Source: Antechinus flavipes (taxonomy: Eukaryota). From it: a stretch of DNA of 64,000 nt. The notes under the pieces are model-generated. The model searched no databases and was not told the origin of the DNA. It worked only from the letters and a program-made list of their open reading frames with translations. The stretch is from NCBI RefSeq assembly GCF_016432865.1, contig NC_067400.1, positions 619,876,001 through 619,940,000 of the forward strand, written 5' to 3'. Positions 19,831 through 28,300 of this stretch are shown here, one piece after another; within the stretch, counting starts at the first letter, position 1; each line of letters begins with the position of its first letter. The position numbers were made by a program, and so were the translations under genes.

Positions 19831-20953
19831 GGGGGGGAGTCATGGAGGAAATTGGAAAGGAAAGTATTTTCAATCAAAGATTGTGGTTGAACTTCCTCAT
19901 GCGCCAGCGTCCTACGGAGCCATAATGTAGAGGCCCAGGAAAGCTCCGCAACTTCATCCAGTCCCGGGGCTCAGAGGCTTCCTACGCGTGCGTCTCGGCC
20001 CCTGTATTCCTTCCCTGGGCCCGGTGCTCGTTACAGGCTATGTGGGCGCATGTGTGTGTGCATGTGGGCAATGTCTCCCCCTCAGACGTAAGCTTTCTCC
20101 TCCCGTCCATTCTCCACACACCCGGCAAACGAGGGGCACTTCCGGACGCTGGTTACCTGATTGCCCCGAGGCGCACAACAGCCTTAATAACCTTCTGGCA
20201 TGGAAAGCAAATCAAACCGAGTTTTTCCCAGAAGCCATTGTTGATAAGTCTAGTGACTCCCAAAATGAGAGGCCTTCCATACAAACGATCCCGGAGTCAG
20301 ACAGTAACAGCAGTTCGGAGGATGAGGATTATCATTATTAAAGAGACTTGAACAGTTAAAAATCAAGAGGATATAAAATCACCTTGAACCTTGAGAATTT
20401 TATTAAGATAAAAATTTAGGTCCAGACTGGAACAATATAACCCACCATAATTATGTATTTATACAGTCTTGTAATTCACAAAAATCACCAATATGGTAGT
20501 CTATTAAAATCCATTAAAAATATCAGGAACAAGGATCAGGAACAAAGACTGTAGCCAGAAGCTGATGGCAGCCCTAGCGATAGCCCAAGATGCCCAGCGG
20601 ATCAGTATTCAGGATCGACTCAAGCTTGTTTGGCTTCCACATCCGCTATAAGGAGGATGCAGCAGAGTCTGGCAGCAGCGAAGAGGGAAGAGACTTATTT
20701 TTCCAAGAGGCTAAAAAGCCCCAAAGAGCTGGAAGCTCAAATTCTTCTATTTCAAAGGAAGAAAACAAGGAATCCTGTTCAACTAAGTGCAATTTAGGAT
20801 GTACCTCCAAGAAGAAACTTAAACTAAAAGGAGGTGGGGACATGACAGATGAGCAAGATGAAACCCCTAAAAGGAAGAAAAATAAGTTCCCTTCACAAGA
20901 CAGTACCTCAGTGGAGGAAAAAGGAAGCAGTGGTAATTCACATCCTGACCAAT

Positions 20954-21422
20954 CATCACAAAACACAAACGATCTTTTGTCTGGAAGGAATATTTCAAGG
21001 ATGTGAAAAATGGGTGTCTCGTGTTTTTTAATACTCTACTTTCTGTTAGAGGATGTGCCACTTCATCCTTTGCAATAATTACTTCTTTCTTCAAAATCTT
21101 CATAGCATAATATTTTCCACTTGCCTTCTCTCGAACCAAATCACTTTCCCAAAAGTGCCTTTACCCAATAGTTTCAAATAGTCAAAGTCATTCATTGTCT
21201 TTCTTTTATGATGAGTTGTAGAAGCATCCATTTCCTCTTCTCCTATATTGTCAATTTGTGAAGTAGGACTACAATTCATCCTTTCCTCTTCTTGCCTCTG
21301 AAGTCTGTCTGCTGCAGCCTGGAGAGCTTCTGTCCATTCTTCCCTTTCCTCTGGAGTGTCCACATGAAATGTTCGTTCTATAACAGCGGTCCACCGGAGG
21401 CGTCTGATAATAAATGTGTTGG
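20954..21422 (-). pseudogene. AKT3: Processed AKT3 pseudogene fragment (end of PH domain, linker and start of kinase domain), frameshifted, truncated at both ends
   Basis: Intronless NTFIIR...[50 protein letters not shown], then a 1-nt deletion near 21138-21140, then [28 protein letters not shown]...RLCFVM. The linker sequence is AKT3-specific. No poly(A). Confidence 0.95.
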
Positions 21423-21454
21423 CCCCCGAGTAGAACGGGACGGGGCGCTGCGGA

Positions 21455-21502
21455 GCGGACGGAGCAATCTGCCCCGGGGCGGACGGAGCAATCTGCCCCG
21501 GG
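21455..21502. repeat. Perfect 24-bp tandem duplication in a CpG-rich segment upstream of C19orf84 exon
   Basis: gcggacggagcaatctgccccggg at 21455-21478 and 21479-21502. Confidence 0.95.
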
Positions 21503-21593
21503 CCGCACCCTTGCCCCGGTTTGGCTCCCGGCCCTAACCTGCTCGCGGAGGGATTCCCATCTAGCCCCTTCTTCAGGGTCCCTGTTTCCCAAG

Positions 21594-23593
21594 ATGGAGC
21601 GGCCGGAGCGGGCGGAGGCCGGAGGGTGAGCAGGGCCGAGAAATGCAAAGATTTGGAGACCTAGAGAGGGTCTAAGAGGAGGGTCGGAGGGCCCGGACAC
21701 CGACGGACAGAGACAGACCTGTAGGGGGAAGGGGCGCGCTGGGGAGGGGGGGGAGAGGGGCTGAGACCTGGGTGGGGATCCCGGGCCGGACTTCGGCCCT
21801 GCTCCACCCTCAGCTCCCTCAGGGACCTGACTCAATCGGCAACTTAATGGCAACTTACTGTGTGTCGGGCACCGAGTCAGGTGCTGGGGGTGCGATAAAC
21901 GAGACAGCCCGAAGGACTAGAAGTTGGTCAGTTCCTTCTCTCTGGAGTTCAGTTTGCCCATTTATAGAACGGGGCCGGAGCAGGGGGACCAGAAGGATGC
22001 ATGTGCAATTCGATGTTGTCTAAGGACTCCCTGAGCTCCGACATCCCCTGTTCTAGGTCCTCTCCCAGCTCTGACCTTCCCTGTTCTAGGTCCCTTCCAG
22101 CTCGGACATCCCCTGTTCTAGGTCCTCTCCCAGCTCTGACCTTCCCTGTTCTAGGTCCCTTCCAGCTCTGACATTCCTTGTTCTAGGTCCCCTTACAGCT
22201 CTAAACCTCTCTTGTTCTAGGTTCCCTCCCAGCTGACATCGCCTGTTCTAGGTCTTCTTCCAACTCTGATCTTCCCTATTCTAAGGGTCCTTCCAGCTTT
22301 GACATCCCCTGTTCTAGGTCCTCTTCCACTTCTGACATTTCCTGTTCTAAGGGCTTTCCAAGCTAAGACGTTCCCTCTTCCAGATCTTCTCCCAGCTCTG
22401 CCATTCCCTGTTCTAGGTTCCCTTCCAGCTCTGACATCCCCTGCTTTAGGTCCTTTCCCAGCTCTGACATTCCTTATTCTAGGTTCTCTCCCAGCTCTGC
22501 CATTCCCTGTTCTAGGTTCCCTTCCAGCTCTGACATCCCCTGCTTTAGGTCCTTTCCCAGCTCTGACATTCCTTGTTCTAGGTTCTCTCCCAGCTCTGCC
22601 ATTCCCTGTTCTAGGTTCCCTTCCAGCTCTGACATTCCTTGTTCTAAGGGCCTTCCAAGCTAAGACATTCCCTCTTCCAGATCCTGACATTCCTTGTTCT
22701 AGGAATCTAATCTAGAAATAGAAGATTCAGGCAAGGATGGGGACGTGGGTGCAGCTAGGGAAGAAGGGGCTTTCTCCTCTCTGACCCCTGGCCCCGTCTC
22801 ATTGCAGAAGCAGCCTCTCGGAGCCCCCGAAGCCGCCGGCCGCCAGCCCTGCTCCCCAGACGCTGGCCCTGAGTCAGGTGGGGCCGGGCCAGTGATGGCC
22901 CCCGGATCCCTGCTGCCCCAGCTCCTCCCCGAGGGTCTGGCCGCCCTCACCATCCCCATCCGCCTGGATGCCCTCTCCTACCTGCTCCACAGTGCCCTGC
23001 TTGGGGCCTACAGCCTCCGGCCCGGCCCCGCCATTTGCCCTTGCCACTCCGCCCCTTACGGGGCCTGGCCGGTGGCCCAGGATGCCCCCAGACAGCACTG
23101 GCCCAGGAGCCAGAGGCAGAGGGAAGTTAATTGGTCGGAGGAGGGGGAATTCAAGGGTGGTAGAGAGCCGGAGGCCCCCAAGAGACGGGCGCGCCCCTCG
23201 CCCCTTCGGCCGGCCCTCAAGGACCAGGGGAGCGAGTCCTGGCGGCGCAGACCCCTCGCCCCTCCGCCCAAGCCCAAGGAGGAACAGGAGAGCAGGTTCC
23301 ACCATCGCCGAAGCCCGGCCGCCTCCTGCACGTCAGCCCCGGCGGAGTGGGAGAGGGATTATCAGCACTGCAGGCCTCCTGTCCCTCCTTCCCCGCCCAG
23401 GGAAGATTGGGAGGGGGGCTACCACCGCCCGAGGGCCCCAGCTGCCGCCAGCCCCCCACCGGCTGAGGACTGGGAGACCGAGTACTACGGAGCCGGGACC
23501 CCAGACCCCCGGGACGCCCCTTTGGGCCGCTCTGAGAGCCCGCTTCTGGAGGACAAGGAGAGCAGCCCCGAGGCCCGGGGCCTCCAGCCCTGA
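21594..23593 (+). CDS. C19orf84: C19orf84 ortholog (piRNA-directed DNA methylation adaptor); coding exons 21594-21625 and 22808-23593 with a frame discrepancy; conserved frame opens at ATG 22895 (232 aa)
   Basis: Contains [29 protein letters not shown] and AEDWETEY, matching human ([29 protein letters not shown]...AEDWETEY). The small exon [10 protein letters not shown] has acceptor cttcag (21576) and donor gtgagc (21626). The strong acceptor is at 22807 and AATAAA at 23926-23931. Position upstream of LIM2 is syntenic. Confidence 0.85.
22031..22705. repeat. ~30-bp minisatellite (ccagctctgacattccctgttctaggtccct) in C19orf84 intron
   Basis: About 20 or more visible degenerate copies. It explains ORFs 22217..22690 and 22299..22715. 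Confidence 0.95.
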
Positions 23594-25348
23594 GCGGCCC
23601 CCAGCGTCCCGACGCCTCGTGGCGTTGCCCGGCCCCGGCCCCTCCTCTGACCCCGGCGGGGGGTCCCCGACTCCAGAGACCGGCCTTCGTCTCCCACTTG
23701 TCCAGCAGGTCTGGGCAGCCGGTGGTACTTCTTTGACCCAAGTTTCTCAAAATTGTTGCCGAACGGGGCTCTGACCTCAGGCCTCGAGTCCCTCTTCTGG
23801 CCCAGGAAAGGACGCAGACATTTCCCTCCCTGTCAGAGCCTCCAGCCCCCACCAGGGACCCAAGCCCCCTGATCCCACAGTTCATGACCCCCGAGGGACC
23901 CAAGCGTCCCGCTCTCCGGTTCACTAATAAAGCTGTTGTGATTCGCCCTTTCTGTGTCCTGGGTGTGTGGTTGGCAGCTGAGGGCTAACCAGGTGGTTCT
24001 GAGGGCCGCGCATTAGTGGAGGGAGCGCAAAGGAAGGAGGGGAGGCCCTGAGGAGCTGGGCTGGGGGCCTTCCCTTCCCCCCAAATCAGTTGTCTCAGCA
24101 ACTCCCATTTATGGCCTTTGCCAGCTCAGCAACTCTGGGGACTAGAAGCTGCTGGTAGCCGGGCCTATTGTCCCGAGGGGTTAAGGGATTTGGGGGCACC
24201 CGGGGGAGGGCATTCAGGAAGGGCTGGGACTGGGCTGGGATTCAGTCTGCACCAGGGGGACGTGATCATCGGAGGGTTCGGCATCATCTCTGAGACTAAG
24301 GTATGGACCGAGGCCCCCGCTCCCGAACCCGGAGCCCCGTCCCAGTCCCCCAAGTGTCTGAATCCCAGCTCCCGCTCCCTCGGGGCTTCGTCTCCCCGAT
24401 CCCCACCACCATCATCTTGGGGACCCAGCAGTTCTGGGGGGGAGCGAGATAACCGGAGCTCCTCACAATACGACCCCAAGTCCCCTGTAGGTATCCACCA
24501 TTCCCCCTTGGAAGATCCAGGTGTCTGACATCTTTAGATGGACACAGAGAGACAAAGAGATGGAAACAAAAACAGAGAGACAGAAACAGGGAGATAAAAG
24601 ACACAAAGAGAGGAAAGAGAGACAGACGGGGGAGAGAAGGAAATAGCAGGTGGTTAAGGGGAGGAAGGAAAGGAAAAAAAGGAAAGGGACACAAAGAGGA
24701 AAAGACAAATAGAGATGGAGATGGGGCGGGGCAGGAAAAACCCTACGGGAACTGAGATGGAGAGAAAGAGACTTCGAGGTACCTACCTCAATGACACAAA
24801 CTAGGGGATCTAGAACCCAGCCAATTCCCCTCGGAAACCAGGCCCCCCGATTTCCCAACCTTCACCCCCGACCCTCTAGGGACCCAAGAACGCTGGTTCC
24901 CCAACTCCCACTCCCTGTCCCCAGAGATAGTTACACCCCTGGGTCCCAGCTCTCCAGGACCCAGTGTGTGATGGAACACTCAGATGGCCAGCCCAGGACC
25001 ATTTAGGACCATTGGCGAATCAGGCGTCTCCCCGTGTCTTTCATTCTCACCTCTCTAAAGGACCCAGACGACCAATGTCTCTGCTGCTAAACTGTCAGAG
25101 ACACAGAATCCATCACCAGCCTTGCCTCCCTCAATCCGGTCTACAAGGACGCCGGCATCTGGGGACATAAATCCCAGCCCGGCCCAGACCCAGATGCAGC
25201 CTCTGTCCCTCAGGTGCTCCTGGCCCCCTGTGCTTTTAAGAGCCAGGGCCCTTAGGTCCCCAGGCCAGGAGTCTCCCCCCCCCACTCTCTGAGGCTCCCT
25301 CATTTCCCTTCCTCCTCTTCCCCCTCCCTCCCTCTCTCCCAGGACACC

Positions 25349-28300
25349 ATGTACAGCTTCATGGGCGGGGGCCTCTTCTGTGCCTGGGTGGGGAACATCC
25401 TGCTCGTGGTTGCCACGGCTACGGACCATTGGATGCAGTACCGGCTGTCCGGGGCCTTTGCCCACCAGGGCTTGTGGCGCTATTGCCTCAGCAACAAATG
25501 TTACCTGCAGACCGAGAGCATTGGTAAGGGGGCTGGTGGGGGGGGGGACCAGGGCCACAGGCCAGAGCCCCGGGCACTTGGCTGTAACCGGGCAGAGCAG
25601 CCCGGGCGGGCACCGAAGTGGGGGAACAGGTAGAGAATCCAGGGGCATCTGGAGGTTGGCAGAGCCAGAGAGTCTTAAGGAAGCCCAGAGCGAGGAGGAA
25701 TATCCTTAAAATGGAGAATGGCGGGGATGGCAGGACCCTTAAAGCAGGGAATGCAGGGATGGCAGGACCCTTAAAGCAGGGAATGACGGAGCTGGGAGGG
25801 GCCAGAGAACAGGGAAAGTTCGAAGTGAGAAGTTAAGAGATGATCAAGAAGGAGAAAGAGAAGCAGGAGGTGTGAAAGAAAAAAAGAGAAAGATGGAACA
25901 GTAACAACAAGGAAGAGACAGAGAGCGGCAGGAGCCAGGACACTGAGGCAGAGATGGGGAAACACATACGGGGAAACAGACGTGAGGAAGGCAGGATGGG
26001 GAGACAGAGGGAGGGAGGAGGAGGAAAGAAACCAAGATGTGGAGAAAAACAGGGAAATCAACAGAGATAGAAAAGAAACAGAGACAATACACACAGAGAG
26101 ACACAGTGAGACAGATACACAGAGACAGAGAGACAACCAGACAGAGACATCGACAGAGAAAGATACAGAGAAAGAGGAAACGGAGAAAGAGCGAGACACA
26201 GAGACATGAACAAAGATACCTGAGAGACAGAGGGAAAGATCCACAGAGACAGAGACAAACACAGACAGAGACAAAAACAGACAGAAACAAGGAGCTAAAA
26301 GACACAAAGAGAGGCAGAGAGGAAGGAGACAGAGACATAAAGAGACAGAAGGGGGAGAGAAGGAAATAGCAGGTGGTAAGGGGAGGAAGGAAAGGAAAAG
26401 AGGAAAGGGACACAGAGGAAAAGACAAATAGAGATGGAGATGGGCCAGGACAGGGAAAACTCTAAGGAAACTGAGATGGGGACGGAGAGAAAGAGGAAAA
26501 TGAACAGAGACAGAAACAGAGAAGGTGAAATAGCTCACAGGAGAGGAGAGCAATCGAGACCAGGTCAAGGTCTGGGAGATGAAGCCCGCGCGCTGCCCAA
26601 CACAAGGGGTACAATGGCAGGCAAGAATCAGCCCCTGTGCTTGAACTCAGGAGATCTCCTGCGGGAGACCCCGTGCCAACAATCAGGGGCACCAAGAGGC
26701 AACCTGGAGGGATGCCCTAGGGAAGGCAGTAGCATCAAGAGAGATGGGGACCCTGGGAAGTGGTCATGAGTGGGGAAAAGGATGGGCTGGGCAGCCTGGA
26801 AGTAACCTCAGAACCCAGATCTTTCCTGCCCCAAGAAGCCAGGGACTGCGGTACATCCCAGAGGGAGAAGAGCTAGCCTCCGTTCTCCTCTCTGCTTTCA
26901 GCTTCAGTCGCCTCCCCGGGCCGCAGTTGCCCTGTTTGCTAAATTAGGGATTTTCTCTAAAATCGTGATCCCAAAGGCCCCTCCCTGCTACTTCACCCAT
27001 CAAGATGTAGCTTCTCCCTATGGAGAACATGCCCAACTTCATGGGGTCCAAAGGGGTGGTTACATTTGGTGATCAGAGGAGGCTCCCTGTGTTAGGAGAA
27101 TCACATGAGCTAGTGGAAAAGGGCTGCATAAATGTCTCTTTTATTACCACTTGTCTATTAGTTATTTTTATTAATTACATTATTATATTTATTACCACTT
27201 ATTACTTATCACCAAGTAGTTCTTAACACAGTTTCTGTGAATGAGACGGTGGGTACATTTGTTGCTTCTTTCATGACATCGCCTTTCGTATTTGAACAAG
27301 TCTGAGACAAAGGGGAGGAAGAATAGTGAGACTCAGAACCAAGAACTGAGTTCCAATCCTGCTTCAGACTCTTGTACAGCCATCACTTTTCTTGGTCGCA
27401 ACCTCAAGTTTGTTCATCTGTTAGGTGACTTGTGGGAGCATCAGCCCTAATACATTGTGGTGTCCAAGCTTTAAGTGCTACATAAACATCATTATTATTA
27501 CCACTTTGCAAAAGAAATAGAGGTGCCGGGAAGGGAGGGGACTTCTCAGAACTGGGAGAGAGTTGGGGCTCTCTCTTTCAAGCAGTGCATAAAAAAATTA
27601 ATCTTCCCTTAGAACATTCTCAATCAGGGATGTCTAGCTTCTTCTGAATTATCTCAGAGCATCAGGGGACCCACTACTCCTAAAGTAATCTCCCCCTAGA
27701 ACATACCTAATAAGGGGTTCTCTAATTTTTGAATACCCGCAGGGGTCAGGGGACTCACTACTCCCAAAAGAGCCCATTTTCCCCTGACCTCAAACCTAAA
27801 TCTCCTCTCTATGCTTTTTGCCCATGACTGTTGCCTTCTGGTATCAATTAGAGCAAATGTGGCTCTTCAGAGACTTGAAGGTAGCCTAGTATGGCTGCCC
27901 TGAACCTTCTCTTCTTTGGATTAAATGTTCTTAGTCCCTTTAACTGCTCTTCATATACCATGAACTGAAATTTCTCTACCACCCTAGTTGACCTCCTCTT
28001 GGTCAGCTTGTTGATGAGCTTTCCCTGGGGTACCCAGAATCAAACACAGTGCACCGAGGGGTTCTTACTAGGGTATGGTATAGCTCCCTAGTTCTGGACA
28101 TGAACTTGCTAAACCTAAGCAAGCCCTGAATTGCTTTTCCAACTGCTGAATCCTCTTGTTGATGCATTCTAAGCATGCAGTCCACTAAAACCCCAAACAA
28201 AATAAAAATAAAAAGCAACCAACAATCTGGATTCTTCTCAAAAATGTTGCTCAGTAAAACCTCTTTTATCTTCCACTGGTGAAGTTAATTTCTTGAATCC

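Follow-up and report, generated by a model that had tools for sequence, protein, structure and literature searches.

Is the short acidic-aromatic motif at the C-terminal end of the mammalian protein C19orf84 triplicated in marsupials, and is its internal position there a marsupial novelty? The question arises from a 64,000-nucleotide stretch of the Antechinus flavipes genome (contig NC_067400.1, positions 619,876,001 to 619,940,000; referred to here as the window, and numbered from its first letter), in which three copies of the motif [DE]WExxY are followed by a 35-residue tail. C19ORF84 is a recently recognised and essential link between the PIWI-interacting RNA (piRNA) machinery and de novo DNA methylation. 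To our knowledge, work on it has been confined to mouse and human, and the mouse study is reportedly that of Zoch et al. (2024, Mol Cell). A sequence-only reading of the window had taken the motif to be 'triplicated and no longer terminal' and the marsupial protein to be multivalent. Our comparison across vertebrates points the other way. We consider it likely that an ancestral pair of internal motifs, together with a tail, was kept by marsupials as the first and third of the three copies, and that the eutherian protein was truncated.

Three motifs and a tail in the antechinus protein

We observed that the window gene is the Antechinus flavipes orthologue of C19orf84 and that the motif stretch is located in its last coding exon. 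The protein matched PF17703 (C19orf84) over residues 11–78 with a score of 47.5 bits, above the gathering cut-off of 40 (E = 2.3e-12), and was 100% identical to the RefSeq 'C19orf84 homolog' of this species (P0001). A LIM2-like open reading frame (ORF) starts downstream of it at 25349 on the + strand. The identity given to the gene in the sequence-only reading is therefore upheld. LIM2 also adjoins the gene elsewhere, as a fused LIM2-C19orf84 model from Galemys (P0080) carries both Pfam domains, and one frog homologue bears the NCBI name of a LIM2 isoform. The ORF that holds the motif stretch extends from 22745 to 23593 (+) and encodes 232 residues when counted from the Met at 22895.

Motif 1 (AEWERDY) occupies 23342–23362, with its Trp codon TGG at 23348; motif 2 (EDWEGGY) occupies 23402–23422, with TGG at 23408; and motif 3, the canonical copy (AEDWETEY), occupies 23462–23485, with TGG at 23471. 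All three are on the + strand, as are the 35-residue tail (23486–23590) and the stop codon TGA (23591–23593). The Trp of motif 2 follows that of motif 1 by 20 residues, that of motif 3 comes after a further 21, and motifs 1 and 3 are separated by 41 residues. The copies, their positions and spacing, and the length of the tail are exactly those reported earlier from the letters alone. A search of all six frames of the 64-kb window for [DE]WExxY returned these three matches alone. The expected number per protein of this composition is 0.0026, and among 200,000 shuffles 503 had one copy and none had two or more; chance therefore does not account for the repetition of the motif.

We compared the contigs of four public sequencing runs (two studies, two organism labels) with positions 21450–24450. 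The Trp and Tyr codons of the motifs and the stop codon showed zero differences among them, and the four variants found within 23342–23593 were all synonymous.

The N-terminal domain (22925–23020, +) is the sole part of the protein recognised by Pfam. It lies within the Pfam match and contains invariant columns in an alignment of 16 therian sequences (A1), where the columns of its helix motif show no variation, and its conservation reaches the sharks (SLSSITIPMRLDALAYLLNHAV in the shark). The canonical EDWExEY is present as well: E191, D192, W193, E194 and Y197 are invariant in A1 and in a second alignment (A2) that includes marsupials, eutherians and turtles, so that these five residues of motif 3 are unchanged across the three groups. 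A single-chain AlphaFold model of the antechinus protein had a mean predicted local distance difference test score (pLDDT) of 55 and a predicted template modelling score of 0.17, as expected for disorder, with helices over the N-terminal residues 24–38 and, a short one, over residues 151–159 at motif 1. The search for a solved structure of the protein or of the motif returned none (best PDB match E = 0.7). The protein has two ancient conserved elements, an N-terminal helix and the acidic-aromatic [DE]W[DE]xxY motifs lying in disorder.

The word 'triplication' would lead one to look for a trace in the DNA. Tandem Repeats Finder reported no tandem repeat with a period near 60–63 nt, and the similarity of the three units came from the motif alone (linker-only p = 0.13–0.95). 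A DNA-level trace of triplication is absent, and a tandem duplication as the source of the three units is neither shown nor excluded by these results.

Motif architecture in marsupials, eutherians and other vertebrates

We compared eight marsupial sequences, namely those of Antechinus, Sarcophilus, Trichosurus, Vombatus, Dromiciops and Gracilinanus, a Logan transcript, and a didelphid-like metaclust entry (P0009). Motif 3 was invariant and internal in all of them, its codons being nearly frozen, and was followed by 33–46 residues in every case. An internal canonical copy with a tail behind it is therefore general in marsupials, as had been proposed. Motif 1 was intact in five of the eight and was broken in three different ways: by TGG to CGG (Trp to Arg) in Sarcophilus, by TAT to TCT (Tyr to Ser) in Vombatus, and by an eight-codon deletion in Dromiciops, the monito del monte. 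Motif 2 was kept in marsupials as a segment [KR]-E-D-x-E-G-R-Y, the usual state being ED-Cys/Tyr/Ser-EGRY. At its Trp site, Antechinus has the codon TGG and Sarcophilus TCC; Trichosurus, Vombatus and Gracilinanus share TGT, and TAT is read in Dromiciops and in the Logan transcript. The Trp is thus missing from six of the eight sequences and, among the species with DNA, is found in Antechinus only; P0009 has the Trp and lacks the Tyr. In Sarcophilus, the Tasmanian devil, which is the closest relative sampled, motif 2 has Ser in place of the Trp and His in place of the Tyr, and one intact copy only is left in the protein.

The antechinus motif 2 differs by one base from the commonest marsupial codon (TGG vs TGT), and because of this we concluded that the three strict copies are a lineage quirk of Antechinus and not a marsupial architecture. 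The ancestral codon at this site is ambiguous (six steps with TGT, seven with TGG). A multivalent marsupial protein with three sites, as had been suggested, is found in Antechinus only.

We estimated constraint as pairwise Nei-Gojobori ratios of nonsynonymous to synonymous substitution (dN/dS), given here for three independent pairs and then for all 21 pairs, with the motif values coming from seven-codon segments. The N-terminal domain (0.08 and 0.04) and motif 1 (0.09 and 0.10) were strongly constrained. For motif 3, the ratio was not computable from the independent pairs (dS = 0, dN 0.04) and was 0.16 over all pairs. Motif 2 (1.44 and 0.29) was indistinguishable from the disordered regions (0.34–0.53 and 0.38–0.60), and the tail (0.38 and 0.51) was like that disordered background. 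As to whether repeats 1 and 2 are conserved in other marsupials, the answer is divided: motif 1 is constrained and mostly intact, and motif 2 has generally no Trp. The description of the motif as a conserved short linear element held up, in that motifs 1 and 3 have ratios of 0.09–0.16 against 0.34–0.60 for the background, within a protein whose low pLDDT predicts that they lie in a disordered region.

The eutherian set consisted of 93 non-human sequences of eutherian type, primates included. In 87 of these, W[DE]xx[YF] forms the exact end of the protein, and a second copy occurs in none of the 93. The single terminal copy attributed to eutherians is thus confirmed for this set, and several copies are not common there. 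Of the six sequences with another ending, five seem to be truncated or mis-modelled. The remaining one, from Dipodomys merriami (P0096), ends in ...AAEDWESES and is the only case of an otherwise normal terminus with the final Tyr replaced; this may reflect natural variation of the terminal motif or an error of sequencing. Elephant, armadillo and hedgehog, from three different superorders, all use TAG as the stop codon. The codon behind the motif Tyr reads GAG in the turtle Pelodiscus. Five marsupials have CAG at this place and the dasyurids TAC or TAT, against TAG in eutherians; the eutherian terminus is one substitution away from the marsupial or turtle codon. Nothing recognisable as a relic of the tail was found 3' of the stop in elephant, armadillo and hedgehog in any frame.

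The antechinus protein shares with eutherian C19orf84 the N-terminal helix domain, the [A/T]EDWExEY motif, the two coding exons and the downstream LIM2. However, it is ∼90 residues longer and has an extra block of ∼45 residues with motifs 1 and 2, and it continues for 35 residues past the canonical motif, whereas the eutherian stop comes directly after the Tyr. With three copies and this tail, it falls outside the eutherian type of layout.

Homologues from turtles were turned up by a profile word search. All seven turtle sequences have two internal copies (e.g. GEDWEADY and GEDWEKEY) at a fixed spacing of 33 residues, with 108–115 residues after the second. An exhaustive profile search gave 32 matches at E ≤ 0.001, whose sources included the catshark (Scyliorhinus canicula, P0124), salamanders (Pleurodeles, Ambystoma), caecilians (Rhinatrema, Geotrypetes), six frogs (Xenopus laevis, P0116/P0134; others P0117, P0119, P0121, P0123 and P0129), alligator (P0122) and, among the squamates, gecko, agamid, python and lacertid (P0120/P0125/P0128/P0130). 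The alligator homologue is misnamed 'translation initiation factor IF-2' in RefSeq. The N-terminal domain is common to the non-mammalian homologues, and for most of them the match to PF17703 covers the same positions of the profile at a score under the cut-off. A monotreme orthologue was found neither in the word searches nor in the exhaustive profile search.

The motif is internal in every non-mammalian homologue, with 49–512 residues after it. Two strict copies are present in the shark, both salamanders, one caecilian and all turtles. In several of the species with a single strict copy, the decayed remains of a second one lie 30–36 residues further downstream (DWESDC in Rhinatrema, DWEKES in Ascaphus, EWEIKH in Xenopus, DWENEC in P0131). 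The A2 alignment places turtle copy A on marsupial motif 1, and it matches turtle copy B both with marsupial motif 3 and with the motif that ends the eutherian protein. The turtle proteins (e.g. Pelodiscus sinensis, P0103, and Chrysemys picta, P0107) share with the antechinus protein the N-terminal domain, a tandem internal DWExxY pair and a C-terminal tail. They differ in their length of 382–431 residues, in a copy spacing of 33 instead of 41, and in having no motif-2-like segment; their tail also carries a conserved element (FSSYLQNLFSDL) that marsupial tails are without.

This element has the form F-x-S-Y-L-x-N-L-x-S-D in sauropsid tails. In a longer form, F-[SV]-S-Y-L-[QK]-N-L-[FY]-S-D-[LM]-P, it is found in turtles, alligator and squamates ∼40–90 residues beyond the last DWExxY, with a weak counterpart in the caecilian Geotrypetes (P0103–P0110, P0122, P0120, P0125, P0128, P0130 and P0131); it is absent from mammals. 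A block hidden Markov model of the turtle element matched squamates with E values of 1e-9 to 1e-4 and one caecilian weakly, and matched no marsupial tail even at E = 100. The marsupial tail (PQDAT-VCSENVLLDP) and the turtle element KDSTFSSYLQNLFSD are alike by eye, and the homology of the two is unproven (hhalign of marsupial against turtle tails, E = 0.36, probability 0.2%).

Because all non-eutherian homologues have internal motifs and tails, and many have tandem pairs, marsupials appear to retain an ancestral-like layout. An internal motif followed by a tail would be the ancestral state, shortened in marsupials, with the eutherian state derived; the ancestral layout most likely included a pair of motifs, as the decayed second copies favour two ancestral copies with later losses. 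The antechinus protein shows this type of layout, with internal motifs, a tandem pair within the 33–57-residue spacing, and a tail. The direction implied by 'triplicated and no longer terminal' as a marsupial gain is hence inverted. What was called a triplication is, on the aligned sequences, better described as a pair that was retained, together with a linker segment resembling the motif, which meets the full consensus in Antechinus. Previously, C19orf84 was reported to appear first in axolotl, and frogs to lack several key nuclear piRNA factors (PMC7618676). The matches listed above suggest that the family is older and more widespread than this.

Gene model, reading frame and flanking sequence

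The coding part of exon 1 extends from the ATG at 21594 to 21624 (+), with the donor GT at 21625, and its translation agrees with the N-termini of other marsupial proteins, e.g. that of Sarcophilus. Intron 1 (21625–22806, +; 1182 nt) is skipped in a contig of run X8 (120 million letters). In this contig, 21624 is followed directly by 22807, and the intron left out has GT..AG ends; on that account we take X8 to be an RNA run. The coding part of exon 2, including the stop codon, occupies 22807–23593 (+), as supported by the ORF, the PF17703 match and the identity to P0001. It contains the conserved N-terminal domain, the disordered region, all three motifs and the tail. X8 contigs span the whole of exon 2, motifs and tail included, and stop at ∼23942, just past the poly(A) signal AATAAA at 23926–23931 (+); the tail is not removed by any splice in them.

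The reading frame is interrupted in the reference as written, where exon 1 is out of frame with the conserved body of the protein and a TGA overlaps the ATG at 22895. A run of G at 22876–22879 (+) is one base short in the assembly compared with the contigs of X6, X8 and X11, the extra base being placed behind 22879 in X6 and X11 and behind 22878 in X8. When one base is added to this run (as N), the spliced coding sequence is open and encodes 277 residues, like other marsupial proteins. The short G-run is probably an assembly error or a polymorphism. The 371-residue RefSeq model appears to work around the missing base by borrowing upstream exons from ∼20590.

We also observed features of the flanking and intronic sequence. 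Within intron 1, ∼22040–22690 is highly repeated; its ORFs on both strands read as repeated 10-residue-like units, in DNA-like runs the summed contig depth reaches several thousand, with numerous joints inside the stretch. This points to a probable repeat of high copy number, either interspersed or in tandem. Just upstream of exon 1, AKT-like coding sequence is found at 20867–21400 on the − strand in two overlapping ORFs of different frames. It gave a Pfam Pkinase match at 20870–21139 (E = 2e-7), and by eye the end of a PH domain, a linker and the start of a kinase domain can be read without an intron between them. From its sequence, this stretch looks like a frameshifted processed pseudogene of the AKT family. 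In the 3' untranslated region, a 24-nt insertion is present behind 23618 in the X6, X9 and X11 contigs, where the X8 contig has a 24-letter gap, and an extra G is present behind 23681 in the X9 and X11 contigs. These differences are either indel polymorphisms or reference errors in a GC-rich region.

Explanations weighed and meaning for the family

In mouse, C19ORF84 is a direct binding partner of SPOCD1, and piRNA-directed DNA methylation requires it as the link from SPOCD1 to DNMT3L and DNMT3C; this bridging, which takes place in fetal gonocytes, is documented in mouse only (PMC7618654, PMC13757620). We propose the following course of events. The ancestral jawed-vertebrate protein would have had internal motifs, usually as a tandem pair 33–57 residues apart, and then a long tail. 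Marsupials would have kept the pair as motifs 1 and 3, 37–42 residues apart, with a shortened tail, and their linker segment (consensus ED-C/Y-EGRY) would have come to meet the full motif in Antechinus through TGG in place of TGT. In eutherians, the upstream copy would have been lost, and the protein ends at a TAG where marsupials have CAG (TAC or TAT in dasyurids) and the turtle GAG. Each intact motif may dock on the same partner surface, with copy number setting valency or avidity, and the surface may be one aromatic-binding pocket of SPOCD1 or of a DNMT3 family member. One copy would suffice, because eutherians, the devil, the wombat and Dromiciops have one each, and extra copies would drift in and out; from the sequences compared, they appear to be easily gained and lost.

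Several points weigh against this account. The Trp of motif 2 could be ancestral and have been lost repeatedly, P0009 having it too. The seven-codon segments behind the motif dN/dS values contain very few sites. The orthology of copies between distant lineages depends on very short elements in disordered sequence, and independent duplications in sharks, salamanders, turtles and marsupials could have produced the same picture. One ancestral copy with later gains is about as parsimonious as two copies with losses, and monotremes contributed no sequence to the comparison. The docking role is putative, and the SPOC domain of SPOCD1 lacks the basic patches with which other SPOC domains recognise acidic motifs (PMC10111866).

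A triplication of a single C-terminal motif in marsupials or their ancestor, with a tail added, would have made a trivalent adaptor and a marsupial-specific piRNA-methylation complex. The three strict antechinus copies at their regular spacing of 20–21 residues, the motif-2-like segment seen in all marsupials and in no other group, and the single terminal copy of eutherians would all fit such an event. However, the outgroups from shark to turtle have internal motifs and tails, often with two copies; Antechinus alone has three strict copies and Sarcophilus has one; the DNA shows no tandem repeat and no significant similarity of linkers; and motif 2 is no more constrained than disordered sequence. 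We regard this explanation as highly improbable. An adaptation confined to Antechinus, in which the change from Cys to Trp gave motif 2 a function as a third docking site and the protein more avidity, perhaps under germline or transposon-driven selection, is also unlikely, though somewhat easier to entertain. The TGG and all three motifs are unchanged in the four runs under both organism labels, the variants of the motif region are all synonymous, ED-x-EG-x-Y around motif 2 is fairly conserved across marsupials, and the didelphid-like sequence shares the Trp. Yet four synonymous variants are too few to show selection, the closest sampled relative has neither the Trp nor the Tyr, the dN/dS of motif 2 is not below that of the disordered background, and the match needs one nucleotide change and so may be neutral.

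The motifs might, on the other hand, be not docking sites at all but phosphorylation or degradation signals, or aromatic 'stickers' whose copy number tunes phase behaviour. The almost wholly disordered protein and the acidic-aromatic composition of the motifs, often with Ser or Thr, would suit such roles, as would the nuclear foci formed by SPOCD1, C19ORF84 and SPIN1 in a Spocd1 mutant (PMC7618654). The conservation of the D-W-E-x-x-Y residues from shark to mammal and the exact terminus in ∼90 eutherians are more typical of contact between a peptide and a pocket, and we consider these roles improbable. An ancestral pair with a tail, kept by marsupials and truncated in eutherians, is the explanation that we prefer.

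Two known systems can be compared with this one. The GW/WG 'Ago hooks' of GW182/TNRC6, of plant NRPE1/SPT5L and of yeast Tas3 are Trp-centred short motifs in disordered adaptors, which connect the effector complex of small-RNA silencing with the silencing machinery downstream of it. Their copy number is variable, single copies are dispensable, and valency evolves fast; by analogy, the DWExxY motifs of C19orf84 may behave alike. The hooks differ in that their Trp is flanked by Gly or Ser and present in many copies, whereas C19orf84 has an acidic D-W-E-x-x-Y in one to three copies. The LSD motif of SMRT/NCoR, read by the SPOC domain of SPEN (PMC10111866), resembles the eutherian C19orf84 motif in being short, acidic, conserved and at the extreme C-terminus. 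SPOC-domain proteins belong to its partner family, and SPOCD1, the direct partner of C19ORF84, has a SPOC domain (PMC7618654, PMC10111866). Acidic motifs at chain ends are common ligands of SPOC domains. Recognition of the LSD motif requires phosphoserine and a basic patch, and the SPOC domain of SPOCD1 is without this patch and the key Arg (PMC10111866). Besides, DWExxY is centred on an aromatic residue, and in non-eutherians it is always internal. The missing basic patches make the SPOC domain of SPOCD1 a weaker candidate for reading the motif.

The gene, its terminal motif and the predicted marsupial proteins in RefSeq were already known. New, as read from the sequences, are the comparative architecture (a putative ancestral pair with a tail, eutherian truncation, and decay or gain in single lineages) and the wider phylogenetic range. 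We would go further only tentatively, to a view that seems to us possible but doubtful: that C19orf84 is a jawed-vertebrate adaptor and not a tetrapod invention, with an ancestral tandem DWExxY docking pair and a long tail bearing a conserved element; that its valency was tuned repeatedly, falling from two to one in eutherians as well as in frogs, squamates and crocodilians, and rising from two to three in Antechinus; and that a single nonsense mutation in stem eutherians removed the whole tail and left the motif at the C-terminus.

The single motif at the end of the protein, as in mouse and human, is then the exception among vertebrates, and an internal pair with a long tail is usual. The antechinus triple motif is not to be taken as a marsupial innovation. 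The proteins compared offer natural variants in copy number (one to three) and in the presence of a tail for probing the binding and valency of the motif, and the devil and the wombat are natural knock-outs of motif 1. If the number of motifs does determine the number of methyltransferase or SPOCD1 units brought together, the piRNA-methylation complex of marsupials and reptiles would be proportioned differently from that of the mouse.

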